Part shown: positions 41,088-64,000 of the stretch, one piece after another
How the letters are laid out: each line of letters opens with the position of its first letter
Numbering within the stretch: position 1 is the stretch's first letter
From: Bispira polyomma
Lineage: Eukaryota
DNA length: 64,000 bases
Assembly: GCA_965649765.1 (NCBI GenBank)
Contig: OZ287755.1
Span: 3,472,001-3,536,000, forward strand
Direction: 5' to 3'
Made by a program: the position numbers and the translations under genes
The notes under the pieces: generated by a model
Told to the model about the DNA's origin: nothing
What the model saw: the letters and a program-made list of their open reading frames with translations, nothing else
The model's database searches: none

Positions 41088-41519
41088 CTAGATATAGAAT
41101 TGTAGATAAAGATCTCTAGAGATAATGTGCACTATCGGTAGTGATGTTTGAACCTTGAAACACCCAAATGTTAATGTCCTGGCTTGTCAATTTAGTAAAC
41201 CATCAGATAAAATGATATGTGCAGAAAACTTAATTTTCTGGTAAACTCCAAAAATATAGTTTAAACTTGATACAGCCTTACTTAGTTTAAACTTTAGCAG
41301 TATAGTTTAAACTTAGATATATTTAGAAAATATTCAAATGGTACTGTATGGGAAAACGATTGTCATGATACTATAATAAACAGGTCTTCGGTATCCCATA
41401 TTTATGAGCATGATTTCTTACCAATTTAGTTAGGACACATAATTACTCAGGTATCTTCAATACATGGTATCCATTTAAATATAGGTTGTGTGGCCAATTA
41501 TTATTAGTTAAATAGTTAC

Positions 41520-42620
41520 ATTAATTGTAATTGTTTGGTTACATTGGAACATAATCACAACAGATGAATGTTCCTGAATGCAAGTTGCTTTGATTCTAAC
41601 AAAAACTTGCATAAATGATATTTTTTAATATAAATTATTAAATCATGTTGCTATACACATGTTTACAATAGGTAATATTGTTGTATGTTTAGCGATAGAC
41701 TGTGGGCCTTTATGCTGTGGTCACACTCAGTATGGTCGCGTTATGTCTTAATTTCCATAAAGGACAGAAATTAATGTGCAAAGCGTGGCAAATTCTGGGA
41801 AATGTAGCAAAAAAATCAATTGATGGGCTGTTTTGTACACGTTTGGTACGCATCTGTACATGTTTTGTACACACATTTAACATGTTTTAAAAGCCGTTTC
41901 TATTATGTTTGTGTTGTTAGCCATGTTTTAAAATATGTTAGCCACGTTTTGAAACCAATTTCGTTCTCGTTTTTAATCTTATTTGTATGTATAGTTTGTT
42001 TTACTCCCGTCCTTTAAGTCAAATTAGCATTGAATATGTGTAATACGTTTCCCGCAAACGCACCAACTGTTTCAGGAAAGTTTTCAGAAAACAGCTAAAA
42101 ACGTATCAAATTTCTAGCAGTCCGAAATTTAAGACGTTTTTTGAAAAAAACAGGATATTAAGGGTCCAACATACTCATGCATGCTTACGCTTACTTACCT
42201 ACACTACATTCTGCTAAAGTTTCATTACATTTTACCTTACGTTCGCAATTTTTTGTGCGTAATCGAAAAGTAAGCCCACTGTGACCACGGCATTAGACGC
42301 CCCAGATAATGGACAGATCTCTATTGTTGACACTACTTTTCCATCCACTGCCAACTACTCATGTGATCAGGGATACAAGAGAATGCTTCCTAAATGGTAA
42401 CTGGTCTACAATACGTGTCATCGTGTCATCGTGTAAAGGTAATTTAAAAACAACTTACACCTTTAAAATGTACCTCACATACTGTAATATTAGTATGGGC
42501 ACATCGCAAATTGAGTTTAAACACCTTACTGGTAAGCCTGTCTTTTTAGTGGTGTGGCTTTACTCGTGTGCCTCTGTATAAACAAAACAGCCAAACAAGC
42601 CAGACCATTACATTGTAAAA
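41520..42620 (+). pseudogene. inverted, disrupted copy of the 566-bp Sushi exon unit
   Basis: Exon 41693-42438 (tttag|CGATAGACTGTGG...GACGCCCCAGATAATGG...TGTAAAG|gtaatt) with flanking intron homology; MITE insertion and ~20-nt deletion. Confidence 0.9.
41713..42292. mobile_element. PIF/Harbinger MITE inside the Sushi pseudo-exon
   Basis: TIR TGCTGTGGTCACA / TGTGACCACGGCA; TSD TTA (41710-41712, 42293-42295); empty site visible in intact array units. Confidence 0.88.
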
Positions 42621-44859
42621 ATAAATGTTTCGAGTGCCACATACATTACCACATCATAGGGTGTGGGTATAATATAAATGTCGAAATATTGTCCCTTTTA
42701 ACATACACCAAGTGTTTATATGTCGTACATAGAGTTATTGATCCATCAAGTGTAAAAAGAAGTTAAGTGTTTTATATATCTATAACTATACAATATACGT
42801 GAATCTAAATGTACACATGTACACACCCCACAAATCCTATGACAGGGTCTCAACCGATGACACTATAAATAAATGAATAAAATTGTCAAAGACTTCTGAT
42901 GACAAATCTCCATCAAGCATTCCTTATTTCTTATTATCCTCTCCATTAACACAAAGTGTTATTTTACCAGCAGGCAAATATGTCCAACACAAGCATGAAA
43001 ACCATTAAGAAGTAGGATGCCGTTAAAATACTTTGGAAAATTACAGCTGTCAATCAGAAGACAGAAAGAAAAACAGCTGGTACAGGAGCTAGACGTTTTT
43101 GTGTGTCACAAACGGTTCAATTAATTTCTGTTTTTAAAAAATCGTTATAATTGTTTTACTAGTACAGTAGCTCTTCGTAGTGGTAGGTAGTGATATCCTA
43201 CTAGTAAAGGGTCCATTTTTTGCCCCCACTCCGTGTGAAAAAGTACCAACATCATCACGATAAGTCATGAAACGTCAGAAAAATATCACGTCGTCACATT
43301 CGACAATCCCTTTATGGAAATGACGTCACTTTGACACGAAACTACTACGCTTTTAGTGTATATTGCTTTTGTACGTTGATGGACGTTAACACGTGTAGGT
43401 GTGACCAGGCCATAATAACCGTCAAAACAAAGTATGTGGAGAGTACACAGCGAATATAAAGTTGTGAGAGATAGACATTTATTATCCACTGTGACGTAGG
43501 TGTGACGTTTCCGTGGCTGTAATACAATGAAGTGTATGACTGTGTGTATGTAAACTTTAGTAGTTACATGAATTTCCAATGTTTTTAATGCCCGGTTAAA
43601 TCAATATTTCAGATAGAAACTTTTTAAAAAGAGTGATTTACATAAAACATGGACCTTAAACCACATCATGGTATCTCAAACTTGATTTAGTGATTTATAA
43701 ATATGTGTTTGAATTTAATCTTTTATAGTAACAACTCTGAACTTGTTGGCTTCTATATTTGCATTGTGACGTACATAATGAATGTGACGTACATAATGAA
43801 AGGTTTTGTGACGTAAACAAAACTATACAAAGTTTTGGGTTGTTTTAATAAGGTTATAGTAAACAACTTAACCCATTAATTATTTAAAACTTTCAATGTA
43901 TATAAAATATAAGCAATATGCAATGTTATTCTGTACAAAACCCGATTTTAGAGTGGTAGAAGGGTTTTTGAAGATAATTCTTGAAGGTCACAACTCTTTT
44001 AGTTTATATTATGTAATTTGCCTTGAATTTCCAATATAAGCATAAGAATTATATTTTATAAATGGATAATAAAGGTAAAACAGCCCTTGTGATGTATATT
44101 AAAAAATATATATGTCTTAAAAAGATAAAACACACAATACTTGCCCTAGCGGGCTCGTATTGTACTGATGATCTTCTTTTGTCATATATTTTTTTAATAT
44201 ACACCAATTGGGAGTTTTACTATTGTATACTGATACCACATATCAATGCTCGAGTACAACCCCCACGTGACAAAAGATCAGACAAAACAATACTGTAGCT
44301 GGCCGCATGTTAATGTAAGTGGCGTGGGGTGTGACCTCAGAGCTCTGTAACCAATCAGAACTATGGTGCATTAGCTAAGCTAGAATGTGTAATGCCCGAA
44401 TAGAACAAGCGGTGTACATTTGTAGGGACACTATTTTTTTGTTTTTTTGTAAAACTGCTATAATCTAAAGAAGATATTACTTAATGTAGTATATCCTTCA
44501 ACACAGTTTTGTAACTTTATTCAGTAATTGTTGAGATAACCTAGCTATCCTTCATCCCGGCTATCCTATAAAAAGCTAAAGTAGTATGACCTACTATATT
44601 ATGTTTGCTTTTCAGTATAGTTTTGTTGTAGTTTGTTTAAAACCTATTTTTTATTCTCCATTTATATGTATATTTTTTTGTACGTTTTTGCTGTTTAAAA
44701 GAAGAAACAACCTGTTTTTCATTTCAATACCTCACACTAGCAGTAATAATGTTATGTTCTTCATTTCAGTGCCTCACAATTATACTGGTAATATTAAGAA
44801 TTCTTAATTCGTCTTCACAGAATACAGACAAAGAACTCTTGTAATAGGGATTTGATAAC

Positions 44860-55691: not shown

Positions 55692-55712
55692 GACACAATA
55701 ATAAGAAGAAGA
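55160..55712 (+). mobile_element. 3' end of a Vingi/RTE-like LINE
   Basis: YSAAEY..AHTKKIN..CRIVTG; WKCFKRLRSGVG..KWG..ECG..QTMEHLLCCP zinc-knuckle; (GT)n and (AAG)n tail. Confidence 0.7.
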
Positions 55713-55730
55713 GTCAATGCAATACAGTTA

Positions 55731-55736
55731 TTTATT
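55731..55736 (-). promoter_or_regulatory. polyadenylation signal of the Sushi/cystine-knot gene
   Basis: AATAAA on minus strand 68 nt after the stop codon at 55804. Confidence 0.6.
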
Positions 55737-55803
55737 CTTACCCAAGTTAAACTGCCCATAGGCTTTAGGTAATTCAATGTGCGTGATTTACTTTCGTATC
55801 ATT

Positions 55804-56253
55804 TCAAGGTAACAAACATCCACATGCTTGAGGCTTGTGGATAGTCATCTTCTTGCAGCTGTCCATCTTCACGAAGACTATGGTAAGACTGGAGCAGAAA
55901 GTGAGATTCTCTACACAGCTCTCCTCAGGTGTAGTACCACTCCTCTTACCTCTACGATGACTCTTGCTGCTCTTGGTACCCTTGTTACTCTTATGATGCC
56001 TTTTGGTGCCCTTCTTATTCTTATGATGACTCTTGGTACTCTTGGTACTTTTGATACTCTTGGTACTTTTGGTACTCTTGGTACTCTTGCTACTCTTGGT
56101 ACTCTTGCTACTTTTGGTACTCTTGCTACTTTTGGTACTTTTGGTACTCTTGGTACTTTTGGTACTCTTGGTACTTTTGGTACTCTTGCTATTGCTACCA
56201 CTATGAACAACACAATGATGGGTATGGTTACCATTAGGCTCAGCTGGTTCGAC
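55804..56253 (-). CDS. terminal exon: (S-T/S-K)n basic repeat plus cystine-knot C-terminus (..SC...PQACGC)
   Basis: Acceptor ttgtttttacag|GTC phase 0; open to TGA; followed by AATAAA. Confidence 0.85.
   Translation of the reverse strand, partial: VEPAEPNGNHTHHCVVHSGSNSKSTKSTKSTKSTKSTKSTKSSKSTKSSKSTKSSKSTKSTKSTKSIKSTKSTKSHHKNKKGTKRHHKSNKGTKSSKSHRRGKRSGTTPEESCVENLTFCSSLTIVFVKMDSCKKMTIHKPQACGCLLP
56030..56192 (-). repeat. 9-bp coding tandem repeat (AGTACCAAR/AGTAGCAAG) encoding STK/SSK
   Basis: About 16 units, synonymous AAA/AAG variation in the STK frame. Confidence 0.95.
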
Positions 56254-56659
56254 CTGTAAAAACAATAAATATTTGCAGCTATACATATATATCAAATTGA
56301 TACTAATGGGACACCCATTGCAGTGGTAACACCTGGTGATTACTTTTGTGTCTCTCGTTGACTCTCTTTGTCAACACTCACTCCTGTAATTATTATATGA
56401 CTGTTGCTATGGCTGCCACGTCTTGCTTATGTTTAGTTATATTTTATGTCATGTTCAAACCACATTCAATGGTGATACAAACTAGTGCTGAAGTACTCTG
56501 AACCACCGGCCTATGTTTACACTATGGGTTAACAGATTATGTTGTTTTGTTTGTGAAGATGCCCAGCATCAATAAAGTGTGATCATATGCATAATAGTAA
56601 TAATAATAATACAAGTAGCAGATTTCTTGCACAAAATAAGCTAAACTAAAACACCTCAC

Positions 56660-56754
56660 CGTGAAAGTTTCATTGTCATGCTTAAATATGACCTCTTTGA
56701 CACAAGAAGTTTGAACACAGAATTCTTTGAGGTGAAACTGCTGTCCTTGTTGAG
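56660..56754 (-). CDS. internal exon (phase 1 to 0): QQGQQFHLKEFCVQTSCVKEVIFKHDNETFT
   Basis: Acceptor ctttaatttag|, donor ACG|gtgagg, 95 nt, phases fit both neighbours. Confidence 0.75.
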
Positions 56755-57812
56755 CTAAATTAAAGGCAATATAAATATATTAAATAACAAGTCATGTATT
56801 ATGTTAAAGCTAATTTAATAACATATATTGTTTGACAAGCCACATATAAAAATGGCCACACCATTTTTTTATCAATCTATAAGCAAATATAAACTATTGC
56901 TTGAAACATTTTCACCTCCATTACACGAGAAAAAATCGAATGCTTAAAGTGTATAAAAATTCTGTTGCTTTTTAGTTTTCTATTTAGCTGACAGTTAAAA
57001 TATACTTTAATCAAAACAATTTTACCCATACCCCTGTTCTGTTACAAAGTTTTCTTTATTTAATCTATGTAGATAGAAATGATTTTTCAATTTTTTTTTC
57101 TTGTGTTTGGTATCTAGTTTTTAAGGAAATGGTTACAACTTTGTTAGAGTACAACAGCCAAAGTGGCTTTCCTTTCCAAAACAATTTGTGTGACACATTG
57201 CTTTTACATTATTTAGTTGATGCATACAATATTTCTTTATTGACGCATCTTTGTGGAATTTAATTTGGATTTCTGAACTGCAAACCACCATCATTGTTCT
57301 GTTAATTCATTGTCCAATTGTCTCTAACATGGACACCTATTACTGTTTCTGTAATGGACAGGTCACAAGAATGTACTGCTTTCATACACTTTGTATTAAT
57401 TAGTAGAAGATTGCAAACGTCCATGAAGCATTTTTTTTGCATACGGCTTACACCATTACAAAGTTCACTTGATGTTTACAATTTTATTTTACTTTTTTAA
57501 ATCGATTATTAGTACTATTACATTGTCATCTATCACTTTCTGCTCACGCCTTTACAACACAACAATTAACAACAATAAAACAAAAGGAAGACTTCAACCA
57601 TTTCACTGTTTACTTTCTTTATCAACAACACCCAAGTCACTGTTACAGAATGTAAGAGAAAGTAACATACCAAACGTAATACTTTGGCAATCCACTCGGT
57701 TAGAGATGAACAATCTATGATTAATTATTATGTGACTAAAATATTGACAAATTCAATACTTTTTATATTACTTCTATTACATAACCCCAACCCAGATCAA
57801 CTATAATCCTAC

Positions 57813-57956
57813 CATTAAGGGTGATTTCCACCTCATCTTCTTTAGTTTTGATCTTTTTCTTGCGAAAGTCACAGCGGATGTTGATATCAGAGGATGAATA
57901 TTCAAACTGTGTTTCACAGTTCCTTTTTGAGAAATGTATAGGGTCGTCACAAATTT
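57813..57956 (-). CDS. internal exon (phase 1 to 1): ICDDPIHFSKRNCETQFEYSSSDINIRCDFRKKKIKTKEDEVEITLN
   Basis: Acceptor cttttgatctccag|, donor AATG|gtagga, 144 nt open; an alternative donor at 57770 is possible. Confidence 0.7.
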
Positions 57957-58287
57957 CTGGAGATCAAAAGCAATTATTATTAATAATAAAGTATTCCCTT
58001 ATTCGTTTTCTAAGCACTGTCAAACAATTAGCATTTAGGCTGATTAAAATGTCCTACTACATGTACTATACTACATATCAAACCTTCAAATGAAGTTACA
58101 GTTATGTTTACAAAGTACTGGTCTGAATAGTTTAGCTGCTTTGTTTATACAGAGGCAGACAAGTGAAACCACATCCCTAAAATGACAGGCTTACTAGTAA
58201 GATGTTTAAACTCAATTTGTGATGTGCTCATACTAATATTACAGTATTTGAGGTACATTTTAATGGTGTAAGTTGTTTTTAAATTAC

Positions 58288-58461
58288 CTTTGCACAACGG
58301 CTCTGTCAAAGACCAGTTACCATTTGGTAAGCATTCTCTTGTAGGAGTACCACTGAGGATATATCCTTGATCACACGAGTAGTTGGCAGTGGATGGAAAA
58401 GTGGTGTCACCAATAGAGATCTCTCCATTATCTGGGGCGTCTAAAGATCCACAGTCTATTG
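58288..58461 (-). CDS. Sushi/CCP domain exon (3'-most)
   Basis: 174-nt phase 1-1 exon tttag|CAATA..AAAG|gtaatt; C..P.NG..Y.C..GY...G...C...G.W....P.C consensus. Confidence 0.92.
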
Positions 58462-58853
58462 CTAAATATACAACAATATTACCTAATGTAAACATGTGTA
58501 TAACAATGTGATTTTATAATTGATATTAAAAATATCTCATTACTACATGTTTTTGTTAGAATCAAATCAACATGCATTCAGGAACATTCATCTAATGTGA
58601 TTGTAACCAAGCAATTACTGTTAATATAACATTCTAAATAGCATGTTATTAACATGGACATCAACAACAATTTTTGCTATGTAATGGTCTGGCTAGTTTA
58701 AATGTTTTGTTTATACAGAGGCAGACAAGTGAAACCACATCCCTAAAATGACAGGCTTACTAGTAAGATGTTTAAACTCAATTTGTGATGTGCTCATACT
58801 AATATTACAGTATTTGAGGTACATTTTAATGGTGTAAGTTGTTTTTAAATTAC

Positions 58854-59027
58854 CTTTGCACAACGGCTCTGTCAAAGACCAGTTACCATTTGGTAAGCAT
58901 TCTCTTGTAGGAGTACCACTGAGGATATATCCTTGATCACACGAGTAGTTGGCAGTGGATGGAAAAGTGGTGTCACCAATAGAGATCTCTCCATTATCTG
59001 GGGCGTCTAAAGATCCACAGTCTATTG
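58854..59027 (-). CDS. Sushi/CCP domain exon
   Basis: Same splice sites and consensus, +566. Confidence 0.9.
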
Positions 59028-59419
59028 CTAAATATACAACAATATTACCTAATGTAAACATGTGTATAACAATGTGATTTTATAATTGATATTAAAAATA
59101 TCTCATTACTACATGTTTTTGTTAGAATCAAATCAACTTGCATTCAGGAACATTCATCTAATGTGATTGTAACCAAGCAATTACTGTTAATATAACATTC
59201 TAAATAGCATGTTATTAAGATGGACATCAACAACAATTTTTGCTATGTAATGGTCTGGCTAGTTTAGATGTTTTGTTTATACAGAGGCAGGCAAGTGAAA
59301 CCACATCCCTAAAATGACAGGCTTACTAGTAAGATGTTTAAACTCAATTTGTGATGTGCCCATACTAATATTACAGTATTTGAGGTACATTTTAGTGGTG
59401 TAATTTGTTTTTATATTAC

Positions 59420-59593
59420 CTTGACACAAAGGCTCTGTCAAAGACCAGTTACCACTTGGTAAGCATTCTCTTGTAGGAGTACCACTGAGGATATATCCTT
59501 GATCACACGAGTAGTTGGCAGTGGATGGAAAAGTGGTGTCACCAATAGAGATCTCTCCATTATCTGGGGCGTCTAAAGATCCACAGTCTATTG
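59420..59593 (-). CDS. Sushi/CCP domain exon
   Basis: Same; CLPSG/CQ variant. Confidence 0.9.
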
Positions 59594-59985
59594 CTAAATA
59601 TACAACAATATTACCTAATGTAAACATGTGTATAACAATGTGATTTTATAATTGATATTAAAAAGATCTCATTACTACATGTTTTTGTTAGAATCAAATC
59701 AACTTGCATTCAGGAACATTCATCTAATGTGATTGTAACCAAGCAATTACTGTTAATATAACATTCTAAATAGCATGTTATTAACATGGACATCAACAAC
59801 AATTTTTGCTATGTAATGGTCTGGCTAGTTTAGATGTTTTGTTTATACAGAGGCAGGCAAGTGAAACCACATCCCTAAAATGACAGGCTTACTAGTAAGA
59901 TGTTTAAACTCAATTTGTGATGTGCCCATACTAATATTACAGTATTTGAGGTACATTTTAGTGGTGTAATTTGTTTTTATATTAC

Positions 59986-60159
59986 CTTGACACAAAGGCT
60001 CTGTCAAAGACCAGTTACCACTTGGTAAGCATTCTCTTGTAGGAGTACCACTGAGGATATATCCTTGATCACACGAGTAGTTGGCAGTGGATGGAAAAGT
60101 GGTGTCACCAATAGAGATCTCTCCATTATCTGGGGCGTCTAAAGATCCACAGTCTATTG
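59986..60159 (-). CDS. Sushi/CCP domain exon
   Basis: Same; CLPSG/CQ variant. Confidence 0.9.
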
Positions 60160-60551
60160 CTAAATATACAACAATATTACCTAATGTAAACATGTGTATA
60201 ACAATGTGATTTTATAATTGATATTAAAAAGATCTCATTACTACATGTTTTTGTTAGAATCAAATCAACTTGCATTCAGGAACATTCATCTAATGTGATT
60301 GTAACCAAGCAATTACTGTTAATATAACATTCTAAATAGCATGTTATTAAGATGGACATCAACAACAATTTTTGCTATGTAATGGTCTGGCTAGTTTAGA
60401 TGTTTTGTTTATACAGAGGCAGGCAAGTGAAACCACATCCCTAAAATGACAGGCTTACTAGTAAGATGTTTAAACTCAATTTGTGATGTGCCCATACTAA
60501 TATTACAGTATTTGAGGTACATTTTAGTGGTGTAATTTGTTTTTATATTAC

Positions 60552-60725
60552 CTTGACACAAAGGCTCTGTCAAAGACCAGTTACCACTTGGTAAGCATTC
60601 TCTTGTAGGAGTACCACTGAGGATATATCCTTGATCACACGAGTAGTTGGCAGTGGATGGAAAAGTGGTGTCACCAATAGAGATCTCTCCATTATCTGGG
60701 GCGTCTAAAGATCCACAGTCTATTG
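60552..60725 (-). CDS. Sushi/CCP domain exon
   Basis: Same; CLPSG/CQ variant. Confidence 0.9.
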
Positions 60726-61117
60726 CTAAATATACAACAATATTACCTAATGTAAACATGTGTATAACAATGTGATTTTATAATTGATATTAAAAATATC
60801 TCATTACTACATGTTTTTGTTAGAATCAAATCAACTTGCATTCAGGAACATTCATCTAATGTGATTGTAACCAAGTAATTACTGTTAATATAACATTTTA
60901 AATAGCATGTTATTAACATGGACATCAACAACAATTTTTGCTATGTAATGGTCTGGCTAGTTTAGATGTTTTATTTATACAGAGGCAGACAAGTGAAACC
61001 ACATCCCTAAAATGACAGGCTTACTGGTAAGATGTTTAAACTCAATTTATGATGTGCCCATACTAATATTACAGTATTTGAGGTACATTTTAGTGGTGTA
61101 ATTTGTTTTTATATTAC

Positions 61118-61291
61118 CTTGACACAATGGCTCTGTCAAAGACCAGTTACCATTTGGTAAGCATTCTCTTGTAGGAGTACCACTGAGGATATATCCTTGA
61201 TCACACGAGTAGTTGGCAGTGGATGGAAAAGTGGTGTCACCAATAGAGATCTCTCCATTATCTGGGGCGTCTAAAGATCCACAGTCTATTG
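61118..61291 (-). CDS. Sushi/CCP domain exon
   Basis: Same; CLPNG/CQ variant; the ORF-shortening stop lies in the intron. Confidence 0.9.
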
Positions 61292-61683
61292 CTAAATATA
61301 CAACAATATTACCTAATGTAAACATGTGTATAACAATGTGATTTTATAATTGATATTAAAAATATCTCATTACTACATGTTTTTGTTAGAATCAAATCAA
61401 CTTGCATTCAGGAACATTCATCTAATGTGATTGTAACCAAGCAATTACTGTTAATATAACATTTTAAATAGCATGTTATTAACATGGACATCAACAACAA
61501 TTTTTGCTATGTAATGGTCTGGCTAGTTTAGATGTTTTATTTATACAGAGGCAGACAAGTGAAACCACATCCCTAAAATGACAGGCTTACTAGTAAGATG
61601 TTTAAACTCAATTTGTGATGTGCCCATACTAATATTACAGTATTTGAGGTACATTTTAGTGGTGTAATTTGTTTTTATATTAC

Positions 61684-61857
61684 CTTGACACAACGGCTCT
61701 GTCAAAGACCAGTTACCATTTGGTAAGCATTCTCTTGTAGGAGTACCACTGAGGATATATCCTTGATCACACGAGTAGTTGGCAGTGGATGGAAAAGTGG
61801 TGACACCAATAGAGATCTCTCCATTATCTGGGGCGTCTAAAGATCCACAGTCTATTG
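61684..61857 (-). CDS. Sushi/CCP domain exon
   Basis: Same; GVTT variant. Confidence 0.9.
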
Positions 61858-62249
61858 CTAAATATACAACAATATTACCTAATGTAAACATGTGTATAAC
61901 AATGTGATTTTATAATTGATATTAAAAATATCTCATTACTACATGTTTTTGTTAGAATCAAATCAACTTGCATTCAGGAACATTCATCTAATGTGATTGT
62001 AACCAAGCAATTACTGTTAATATAACATTTTAAATAGCATGTTATTAACATGGACATCAACAACAATTTTTGCTATGTAATGGTCTGGCTAGTTTAGATG
62101 TTATGTTTATACAGAGGCAGACAAGTGAAACCACATCCCTAAAATGACAGGCTTACTGGTAAGATGTTTAAACTCAATTTGTGATGTGCCCATACTAATA
62201 TTACAGTATTTGAGGTACATTTTAGTGGTGTAATTTGTTTTTATATTAC

Positions 62250-62423
62250 CTTGACACAAAGGCTCTGTCAAAGACCAGTTACCACTTGGTAAGCATTCTC
62301 TTGCAGGAGTACCACTGAGGATATATCCTTGATCACACGAGTAGTTGGCAGTGGATGGAAAAGTGGTGTCACCAATAGAGATCTCTCCATTATCTGGGGC
62401 GTCTAAAGATCCACAGTCTATTG
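62250..62423 (-). CDS. Sushi/CCP domain exon
   Basis: Same; TPARE/CLPSG variant. Confidence 0.9.
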
Positions 62424-62815
62424 CTAAATATACAACAATATTACCTAATGTAAACATGTGTATAACAATGTGATTTTATAATTGATATTAAAAAGATCTC
62501 ATTACTACATGTTTTTGTTAGAATCAAATCAACTTGCATTCAGGAACATTCATCTAATGTGATTGTAACCAAGCAATTACTGTTAATATAACATTTGAAA
62601 TAGCATGTTATTAACATGGACATCAACAACAATTTTTGCTATGTAATGGTCTGGCTAGTTTAGATGTTTTATTTATACAGAGGCAGACAAGTGAAACCAC
62701 ATCCCTAAAATGACAGGCTTACTAGTAAGATGTTTAAACTCAATTTGTGATGTGCCCATACTAATATTACAGTATTTGAGGTACATTTTAGTGGTGTAAT
62801 TTGTTTTTATATTAC

Positions 62816-62989
62816 CTTGACACAAAGGCTCTGTCAAAGACCAGTTACCACTTGGTAAGCATTCTCTTGCAGGAGTACCACTGAGGATATATCCTTGATC
62901 ACACGAGTAGTTGGCAGTGGATGGAAAAGTGGTGTCACCAATAGAGATCTCTCCATTATCTGGGGCGTCTAAAGATCCACAGTCTATTG
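62816..62989 (-). CDS. Sushi/CCP domain exon
   Basis: Same; TPARE/CLPSG variant. Confidence 0.9.
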
Positions 62990-63381
62990 CTAAATATACA
63001 ACAATATTACCTAATGTAAACATGTGTATAACAATGTGATTTTATAATTGATATTAAAAAGATCTCATTACTACATGTTTTTGTTAGAATCAAATCAACT
63101 TGCATTCAGGAACATTCATCTAATGTGATTGTAACCAAGCAATTACTGTTAATATAACATTTGAAATAGCATGTTATTAACATGGACATCAACAACAATT
63201 TTTGCTATGTAATGGTCTGGCTAGTTTAGATGTTTTATTTATACAGAGGCAGACAAGTGAAACCACATCCCTAAAATGACAGGCTTACTAGTAAGATGTT
63301 TAAACTCAATTTGTGATGTGCCCATACTAATATTACAGTATTTGAGGTACATTTTAGTGGTGTAATTTGTTTTTATATTAC

Positions 63382-63555
63382 CTTGACACAACGGCTCTGT
63401 CAAAGACCAGTTACCATTTGGTAAGCATTCTCTTGTAGGAGTACCACTGAGGATATATCCTTGATCACACGAGTAGTTGGCAGTGGATGGAAAAGTGGTG
63501 TCACCAATAGAGATCTCTCCATTATCTGGGGCGTCTAAAGATCCACAGTCTATTG
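63382..63555 (-). CDS. Sushi/CCP domain exon
   Basis: Same; CLPNG/CQ variant. Confidence 0.9.
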
Positions 63556-63947
63556 CTAAATATACAACAATATTACCTAATGTAAACATGTGTATAACAA
63601 TGTGATTTTATAATTGATATTAAAAAGATCTCATTACTACATGTTTTTGTTAGAATCAAATCAACTTGCATTCAGGAACATTCATCTAATGTGATTGTAA
63701 CCAAGCAATTACTGTTAATATAACATTTTAAATAGCATGTTATTAACATGGACATCAACAACAATTTTTGCTATGTAATGGTCTGGCTAGTTTAGATGTT
63801 TTGTTTATACAGAAGCAGACAAGTGAAACCATATCACTAAAATGACAGGCTTACTGGTAAGATGTTTAAACTCAATTTGTGATGTGCCCATACTAATATT
63901 ACAGTATTTGAGGTACATTTTAGTGGTGTAATTTGTTTTTATATTAC

Positions 63948-64000
63948 CTTGACACAAAGGCTCTGTCAAAGACCAGTTACCACTTGGTAAGCATTCTCTT
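63948..64000 (-). CDS. Sushi/CCP domain exon (partial, cut by window edge)
   Basis: 3' part RECLPSGNWSLTEPLCQ and donor at 63946-63947. Confidence 0.85.

Follow-up and report, generated by a model that had tools for sequence, protein, structure and literature searches.

The lengthening of proteins by tandem exon duplication is a familiar phenomenon, and the gene described here adds a case to it without changing what is known. The gene lies on the minus strand at the right-hand end of, and partly beyond, a 64,000-nt stretch of the Bispira polyomma genome (GCA_965649765.1, contig OZ287755.1, positions 3,472,001-3,536,000 of the forward strand; C8:3472001-3536000 in the genome numbering), hereinafter the window, and contains an array of 566-bp units, each comprising one Sushi exon and one intron. 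The closest described systems are those of LPA, CR1 and DMBT1. The LPA unit is about 5.5 kb long and includes two exons, and the CR1 repeat, which originated by unequal crossover, consists of several SCR exons and spans tens of kb. The respective publications describe the kringle IV-2 of LPA as a coding variable number tandem repeat (VNTR; PMC11201333), report that the S allotype of CR1 (CD35) surpasses the F allotype in size by one long homologous repeat (LHR; PMC2189269, PMC2188588), and propose that copy-number variation of the SRCR domains in DMBT1 is selectively kept (PMC9038570).

The array resembles LPA kringle IV-2 in that exon and intron are repeated in tandem within a gene, the copies, introns included, are nearly identical and in frame, and the encoded module is disulfide-rich, glycosylated and secreted (the last two properties being predictions in the present case). 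The difference is that LPA has documented copy-number polymorphism, whereas here the unit is 566 bp long, contains a single exon and is seen on one assembled haplotype; the comparison with LPA is apt as an analogy. CR1 shares with the present gene the type of domain (Sushi, or SCR) and the change in length by gain of repeated genomic blocks, but has few multi-exon copies as opposed to 16 single-exon units, and the relatedness is confined to the common domain. DMBT1 similarly carries tandem domain exons in a secreted glycoprotein (here, a predicted one) and is itself a pattern-recognition molecule; it differs in its domain (SRCR), longer units and population data.

The most probable interpretation, which we consider well supported, is that this compact gene codes for a secreted protein with a predicted length of 1181 residues, whose 16 Sushi domains all derive from a single 566-bp block, multiplied via misaligned recombination or slippage, with subsequent exchange between the copies. 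Under this scenario, one block, consisting of a 174-nt phase 1-1 exon and a 392-nt intron, would have been multiplied head to tail to yield all the Sushi domains, the likely route being misaligned recombination or replication slippage involving sister or homologous chromatids, and later rounds of unequal exchange and conversion would have remodelled the array. We infer this mechanism, along with the inclusion of all 16 exons in the mRNA, secretion, glycosylation and any variation of the copy number between individuals.

The array comprises 16 head-to-tail units on the minus strand and extends from window position 58104 to about 67022 (C8:3539022), about 3 kb past the window end. It was followed there using the next 30 kb of the contig, with a continued numbering that counts on beyond 64000. 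The gene runs right to left in the window; U1 is the last unit in the gene (lowest window coordinate) and U16 is the first, with U1-U10 complete in the window and U11 cut by its end (58104..64000). A repeat search of the window shows that the 566-bp period is exact at every start-to-start spacing (10 copies of a 300-nt repeat and 11 of a 237-nt repeat), and a search of the organism's own genome (1.035 Gb, 75 contigs) identifies, at C8:3530104-3539037, 15 full-length units plus one that is 445 nt long. In the in-register comparison, 15 units are 96.3-100% identical to unit 5 and the 16th, which is partly homologous, is 81% identical, with nothing beyond it; the sequences that lie upstream of 58104 by one, two and three periods are unrelated (25-31% identity). 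The units are 96-99.8% alike, and the 10 complete units of the window differ pairwise at 1-24 of the 566 positions, with zero indels. An earlier interpretation of this DNA made without database searches (the sequence-only reading) held that exon and intron were amplified together as near-identical units of this length, which the exact spacing and the identity bear out; it also placed the start of the array at 58110 with at least 11 units, and of this the array itself stands, while the start is at 58104 and the count is 16. The array is missing from the Tandem Repeats Finder (TRF) list for the window because the longest TRF period is 500.

At its 5' edge the array breaks off sharply, at unit position 137 of U16, and at its 3' edge it fades across positions 530-565 of U1. 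A paralogue with a single Sushi exon aligns without a break over unit positions 66-565, which places the original duplication junction near 565/0 and makes the truncation of the first unit a later event. Beside the unit junction, about 100 nt of intron (window 58113-58211, and likewise in every unit) match a dispersed repeat that is found on at least five other chromosomes, with 74-79% identity, and many loose-ended contigs converge at 58127 and 58159. The dispersed repeat might have been the seed of the first duplication.

The exon borders are the same in all 16 units (minus strand; the slash marks the border): the acceptor reads ..ttgtatatttag/ (..tatttag/CA), the donor is AAG/gtaat, and both ends are in phase 1, with the split codon G/CA encoding Ala at the exon start. 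The product of the exon consists of 58 residues, A-IDCGSLDAPDNGEISIGDTTFPSTANYSCDQGYILSGTPTRECLP(N/S)GNWSLTEPLC(Q/K), and matches the Pfam Sushi family, PF00084, over the entire profile (positions 1-56 of 56; E 1.2e-11, with a score of 45.2 bits where the cut-off is 20.7; exon of U5). The Sushi/CCP domain is defined by four cysteines and a conserved tryptophan in about 60 residues, and its encoding by one exon with phase 1-1 borders is common although not universal. Both features are present here: the pattern C..C..C..W..C is matched 16 times on the minus strand, and there is one domain per phase 1-1 exon in 16 of 16 cases. All 16 exons retain the AG, the GT, the open frame, the four cysteines and the NYS and NWS sequons. 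As in a coding VNTR or macrosatellite, the units are arranged head to tail, and each holds a whole exon with its intron, in frame. Given the symmetric phase, each unit gained or lost leaves the frame intact and changes the protein by 58 residues and two N-glycosylation sequons; both the tolerance of any copy number and the two sequons per domain had been claimed in the sequence-only reading and hold for every exon of the array.

By splice borders and frame, the Sushi exons are located, all on the minus strand, at 58288..58461 (U1, the last in the gene) and 58854..59027 (U2), both with the K58 allele; 59420..59593 (U3), 59986..60159 (U4), 60552..60725 (U5) and 61118..61291 (U6); 61684..61857 (U7, with D19V); 62250..62423 (U8) and 62816..62989 (U9), both with T41A; 63382..63555 (U10); and 63948..64000 (U11, the whole exon being 63948-64121). 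The exons of U12-U16 and the signal-peptide exon lie beyond the window.

With the two array edges left out, 7 of the 174 exon sites and 25 of the 392 intron sites are variable (Fisher p=0.33), in accord with the earlier statement that the introns are about as conserved as the exons. Five of the seven exon changes are non-synonymous (E14D, D19V, T41A, N47S, Q58K) and two are silent; E14D occurs in two units beyond the window, and the N/S, K/Q, T/A and D/V variants noted from the sequence are all present as N47S, K58Q, T41A and D19V. U1 and U2 (58104-59235) share seven alleles that are private to them, among which are K58, a silent site and four sites in the intron, as the sequence-only reading had stated for the two 3'-most units. 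Private alleles are also shared by U15-U16 (one), U11-U14 (two), U3-U5 (one) and U8-U9 (one), and site 34 alternates A, C, A, C over U14-U11, as would be expected after duplication of a two-unit block. Neighbouring units differ on average at 5.6 sites and non-neighbours at 9.7 sites, and the edge units are the most divergent in the array. The four-gamete test, applied to 18 informative sites, detects all four combinations in 28 of the 153 site pairs.

Taken unit by unit, the variants thus display the blocks and mosaics that had been described, that is, shared multi-unit blocks and four-gamete failures, and the pattern fits unequal exchange or conversion between units. This part of the earlier claim of ongoing unequal crossover or conversion stands; "ongoing" is an extrapolation from one assembled haplotype, and the length-polymorphic protein that the sequence-only reading expected as the outcome is a prediction. 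The likeness is 96-99.8% within the array as against 72-78% between it and a paralogous array on C12, introns included, as in concerted evolution, and separate recent expansions would give the same picture. A competing scenario is a single burst, i.e., a short series of duplications by slippage or a rolling-circle-like process followed by point changes only. The low divergence is compatible with such a burst, stepwise duplication of blocks of 1-4 units can yield the block structure, and the C12 array contains a higher-order duplication of this kind. Nevertheless, the site pairs with all four combinations call for inter-unit exchange or recurrent mutation, and the core of the array is clearly younger than its edge units, so that we view a burst without exchange as conceivable but rather unlikely.

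The predicted coding pieces of the gene, which spans about 11.7 kb on the minus strand, add up to 73+16x174+144+95+447 = 3543 nt, or exactly 1181 codons. The first coding exon, with its ATG at 67469 in the continued numbering (L001 3469), encodes MKLLLMLFVIICQGPTYGHTVIGP and ends with the phase-1 donor CCAG/gttaagta; judged from its hydrophobic stretch, it reads like a signal peptide. Comparison with the C12 paralogue revealed this exon, which is retained there, start and phase-1 donor included. Downstream of the array, three further exons on the minus strand fit in phase. Exon A (57813..57956; 144 nt, phase 1-1, three cysteines) opens a C-terminal cysteine-rich module that continues in exon B (56660..56754; 95 nt, phase 1 to 0, two cysteines) and exon C (55804..56253), the last coding exon, which has five cysteines, an RRGKR motif and a 9-bp TKS/SKS repeat, and ends with ..ACGCLLP and the TGA at 55804-55806. 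The repeat is a 9-bp coding minisatellite of 17.8 copies (55960-56188, minus strand). An AATAAA on the minus strand about 70 nt past the stop (55731..55736), read from the sequence, probably serves as the poly(A) signal. The predicted protein combines Sushi domains linked by 4 residues with a cysteine-rich tail of roughly 230 residues that includes the basic TKS repeat. The 3' junctions are confirmed by a copy of the gene at C5:15.29M, in which the borders between the last Sushi exon and exon A, between A and B, and between B and C abut without introns at the predicted positions; this copy would record the mRNA splicing of the gene family despite its likely death.

The similarity of the 16 acceptors and donors, together with the phase 1-1 borders that make any subset in-frame, raises another possibility, namely that the array is real and only a subset of its exons enters the mRNA, by cassette skipping or partial use of splice sites, resulting in shorter or variable proteins, as the sequence-only reading had suggested with its variable exon skipping. 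Nothing in the sequence favours skipping, however; a choice among near-identical exons would be pointless, and neither the 392-nt introns nor the splice sites are out of the ordinary. We consider such partial use unlikely.

Exons A, B and C taken singly show no Pfam family at a meaningful E (the best values, 0.28-0.85, are noise), a profile of eight tails of the family retrieves 0 PDB chains at E<=10, and the comparison of the tail with the Atlas gives no usable match. The tail may be a cystine knot of the Spaetzle/neurotrophin type, a label for which these searches with single exons and family tails gave no profile or sequence match, and a literature search on Sushi domains combined with a knot shows no similar architecture among the matches listed.

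The gene belongs to a paralogue family, with seven matches in the genome to exon A and nine to the tail of exon C. Members with an assigned number of Sushi exons are those at C8:37.5M (one), C5:55.5M (two, about 500 bp apart) and C12:34.87M (11, in 1251-bp units that are 98.5-100% alike; C12:34871719-34886870, loci L004-L006), in addition to the 16 exons in 566-bp units at the present locus. The C12 array has the same architecture, with a signal-peptide exon, Sushi exons and the tail exons A, B and C, and likewise consists of near-identical exon-plus-intron units, but differs in the unit length, in the number of exons, in two units from which the exon is deleted and in its 72-78% identity to the present units (72% overall; 78% in the exon and 76-80% in the alignable intron). 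Its higher-order duplication covers 5.6 kb, with four and a half units copied as one block. The different unit lengths (about 500, 566 and 1251 bp) and borders indicate separate, recurrent amplifications rather than one inherited array.

Comparison with three paralogues (139-144 codons for the tail) gives dN (non-synonymous substitutions per site) of 0.08-0.11 and dS (the synonymous counterpart) of 0.29-0.32 for the tail, with a pooled dN/dS of 0.28-0.34 (non-synonymous versus synonymous contrast, p=0.0008); the tail is under purifying selection. In the Sushi exon, dN between paralogues is 0.29-0.34 and dN/dS is 0.77-1.3, which is not different from 1 (p=0.52), and its non-synonymous change exceeds that of the tail (p=2e-4 and 4e-7). 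The stalk domain keeps its scaffold residues and is otherwise free to change. The purifying selection on the tail and the contrast between Sushi exon and tail point to a working gene family. These results bear on the view that the locus is decaying, i.e., that the array is a young neutral expansion in a disused gene, as in the dead copies of the family. Such a view could draw on the neutral-looking changes within the array, on the Sushi dN/dS of about 1 and on the existence of dead family members (the C5:15.29M pair with a TAA and a split solo unit at 41505-42622). Here, however, the gene is intact and in frame throughout, from the signal peptide over the 16 exons, the 34 splice sites and the three tail exons to the stop, and the tail is constrained relative to three paralogues; decay of the locus seems quite improbable.

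Several other copies and fragments of the family are found in the genome. The C5:15.29M copy (L007 2047-4407 = C5:15292047-15294407) has an intron upstream and a TAA in exon A, and has an inverted twin near C5:15301460-15302175; the TAA and the inverted pair imply that it is probably dead. It looks as if it had lost introns with a 3' bias or had been processed only in part. In this copy, a weak chitin-binding stretch (CBM_14, 18.5 bits against the cut-off of 22.1) is fused before the first Sushi domain; a chitin-binding exon of this kind was not found by tblastn at the present locus or in C12. In the C9 paralogue (L009 4220-7150), a matching TKS repeat takes up an open frame about 2.8 kb long, and the repeat is absent from the C5:15.29M copy, so that the coding repeat of the tail ranges from 0 to about 900 residues among paralogues and is a second length-variable part of the family.

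Within the window, on the opposite strand, a dead solo 566-bp unit (41505-42622, plus strand) is 81-82% identical to the array units; an insertion of about 580 bp, flanked by TTA on both sides, interrupts its Sushi exon, which has an internal deletion as well. At C2:3300960-3301913 lies a twin that is split in the same way, which indicates that the unit, once broken, was copied in its turn to another chromosome. An isolated fragment at C8:5316852-5317161 (L008 4829-5014), 1.8 Mb away on the same chromosome, is 95% identical to the unit (exon and downstream intron, K58-type), with the exon start replaced. Finally, two distant relatives of the tail alone on C4 and C11 (L013 2814-2996; L014 3377-3592 and 4056-4202) show 36-40% identity with the same cysteine spacing and end with GC rather than CGC, which suggests that the tail may belong to a wider family of small cysteine-rich proteins.

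Read data from one study, in the form of contigs with word depths, come from three runs (X1 and X2 from sample S1, X3 from sample S2) and were compared over 55700-61699; contig depth is no copy number, so the estimates are crude. The unique flank, 56159-58156, is one contig of 1998 nt with a word depth of 14.9, 17.7 and 102.5 in X1, X2 and X3, respectively. A 596-nt contig stands for the array in X1 and X2, with depths of 166.5 and 196.4, and a 427-nt piece at depth 905 does so in X3. The length of the former is 566+30, and its first 30 letters are identical to the last 30, as is characteristic of a head-to-tail loop when the graph uses 31-letter words. With 16 units on both haplotypes, the expected mean word count is 12.2 (11.4 for the X3 piece); the array/flank depth ratios of 11.2, 11.1 and 8.8 translate to about 14.6, 14.6 and 12.3 units in X1, X2 and X3 (main-path estimate). 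The summed depth over the array bins yields 13.2, 14.1 and 14.5 copies, and 12.0, 12.2 and 12.6 copies without the first bin, which contains the piece of the dispersed repeat.

Altogether, the two crude methods give 12.0-14.6 copies for S1 versus 12.3-14.5 for S2, and the samples differ by one method only, the main-path difference (14.6 vs 12.3 units) not being upheld by the total-mass estimate. The letters specific to X3 (58309, 58311 and 58794-58830) were considered as an allelic difference and set aside, given that the likeness there is 90%, that they may come from paralogues, and that X1 and X2 have no cover at these positions. Both samples truly carry the unit in multiple copies, roughly 12-15, which is the outcome of the read-depth check that the sequence-only reading had proposed, run here on contig word depths. 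That the assembly is over-expanded or mis-built and the true locus holds one or few units, as might be suspected from the perfect period without indels, the depth estimates below 16 and the single haplotype, is extremely improbable, given that independent contigs from two samples close the 566-bp loop at 9-11 times the word depth of the flank and the units bear structured variants instead of being identical copies.

Certain observations do weigh against a working gene that grew by multiplication of one block. The 5' edge at unit position 137 means that a simple duplication model requires a second event, and zero indels against about 32 variable sites is slightly odd (Poisson p about 0.03, under an assumed indel rate). 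The ratio of five non-synonymous to two silent changes is the neutral expectation, so that intact frames in such young copies prove little, and the Sushi exon is free of purifying selection between paralogues. The depth estimates of 12-15 are somewhat under the 16 units assembled, and none of the three listed runs is recorded as RNA, their contigs covering intron and intergenic sequence in a DNA-like manner. In the protein databases, of the 9609 Sushi matches in a representative protein set, the best 150 by E-value are 33-50% identical, with none above 50% among these 150 (ranked by E-value, not by identity), and a set of 5.8 billion proteins gives no candidate for the Sushi exon, for a 116-aa open frame (region 12-69) or for exon C (region 100-149), in a search limited by length window and word sharing, where a blank says little; within the reach of these tools, the gene itself has no record.

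The protein pattern as such is not rare: the predicted proteins P0064 and P0110 also contain 11-13 near-identical Sushi domains in a row, but these are only 47% identical to the present domain and are accompanied by other flanking domains (IgGFc_binding in P0064).

With these points taken into account, multiplication of one exon-intron block within a functional gene remains our favoured interpretation, and the locus provides a clean, young example of a modular extracellular protein that grows by copying a symmetric exon with its intron. The paralogue series of 1, 2, 11 and 16 copies, with different unit borders in one genome, could serve to study the birth and homogenisation of arrays, the number of identical disulfide-bonded domains in a row that a secreted protein tolerates and possible selection of stalk length. 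The value of the system would rise if the length were polymorphic or if the tail were a signalling ligand.

A broader proposal, which we advance tentatively and regard as doubtful, is that stalk length is an evolving trait of this lineage-restricted secreted family, in which three paralogues each amplified the block separately (2, 11 and 16 copies; about 500, 1251 and 566 bp), the Sushi surface changes at the pace of silent sites, the tail is conserved and the TKS repeat swells. If so, alleles of different length would be expected between individuals, and selection may favour diversity of reach and surface, as in molecules of immune or gamete recognition.

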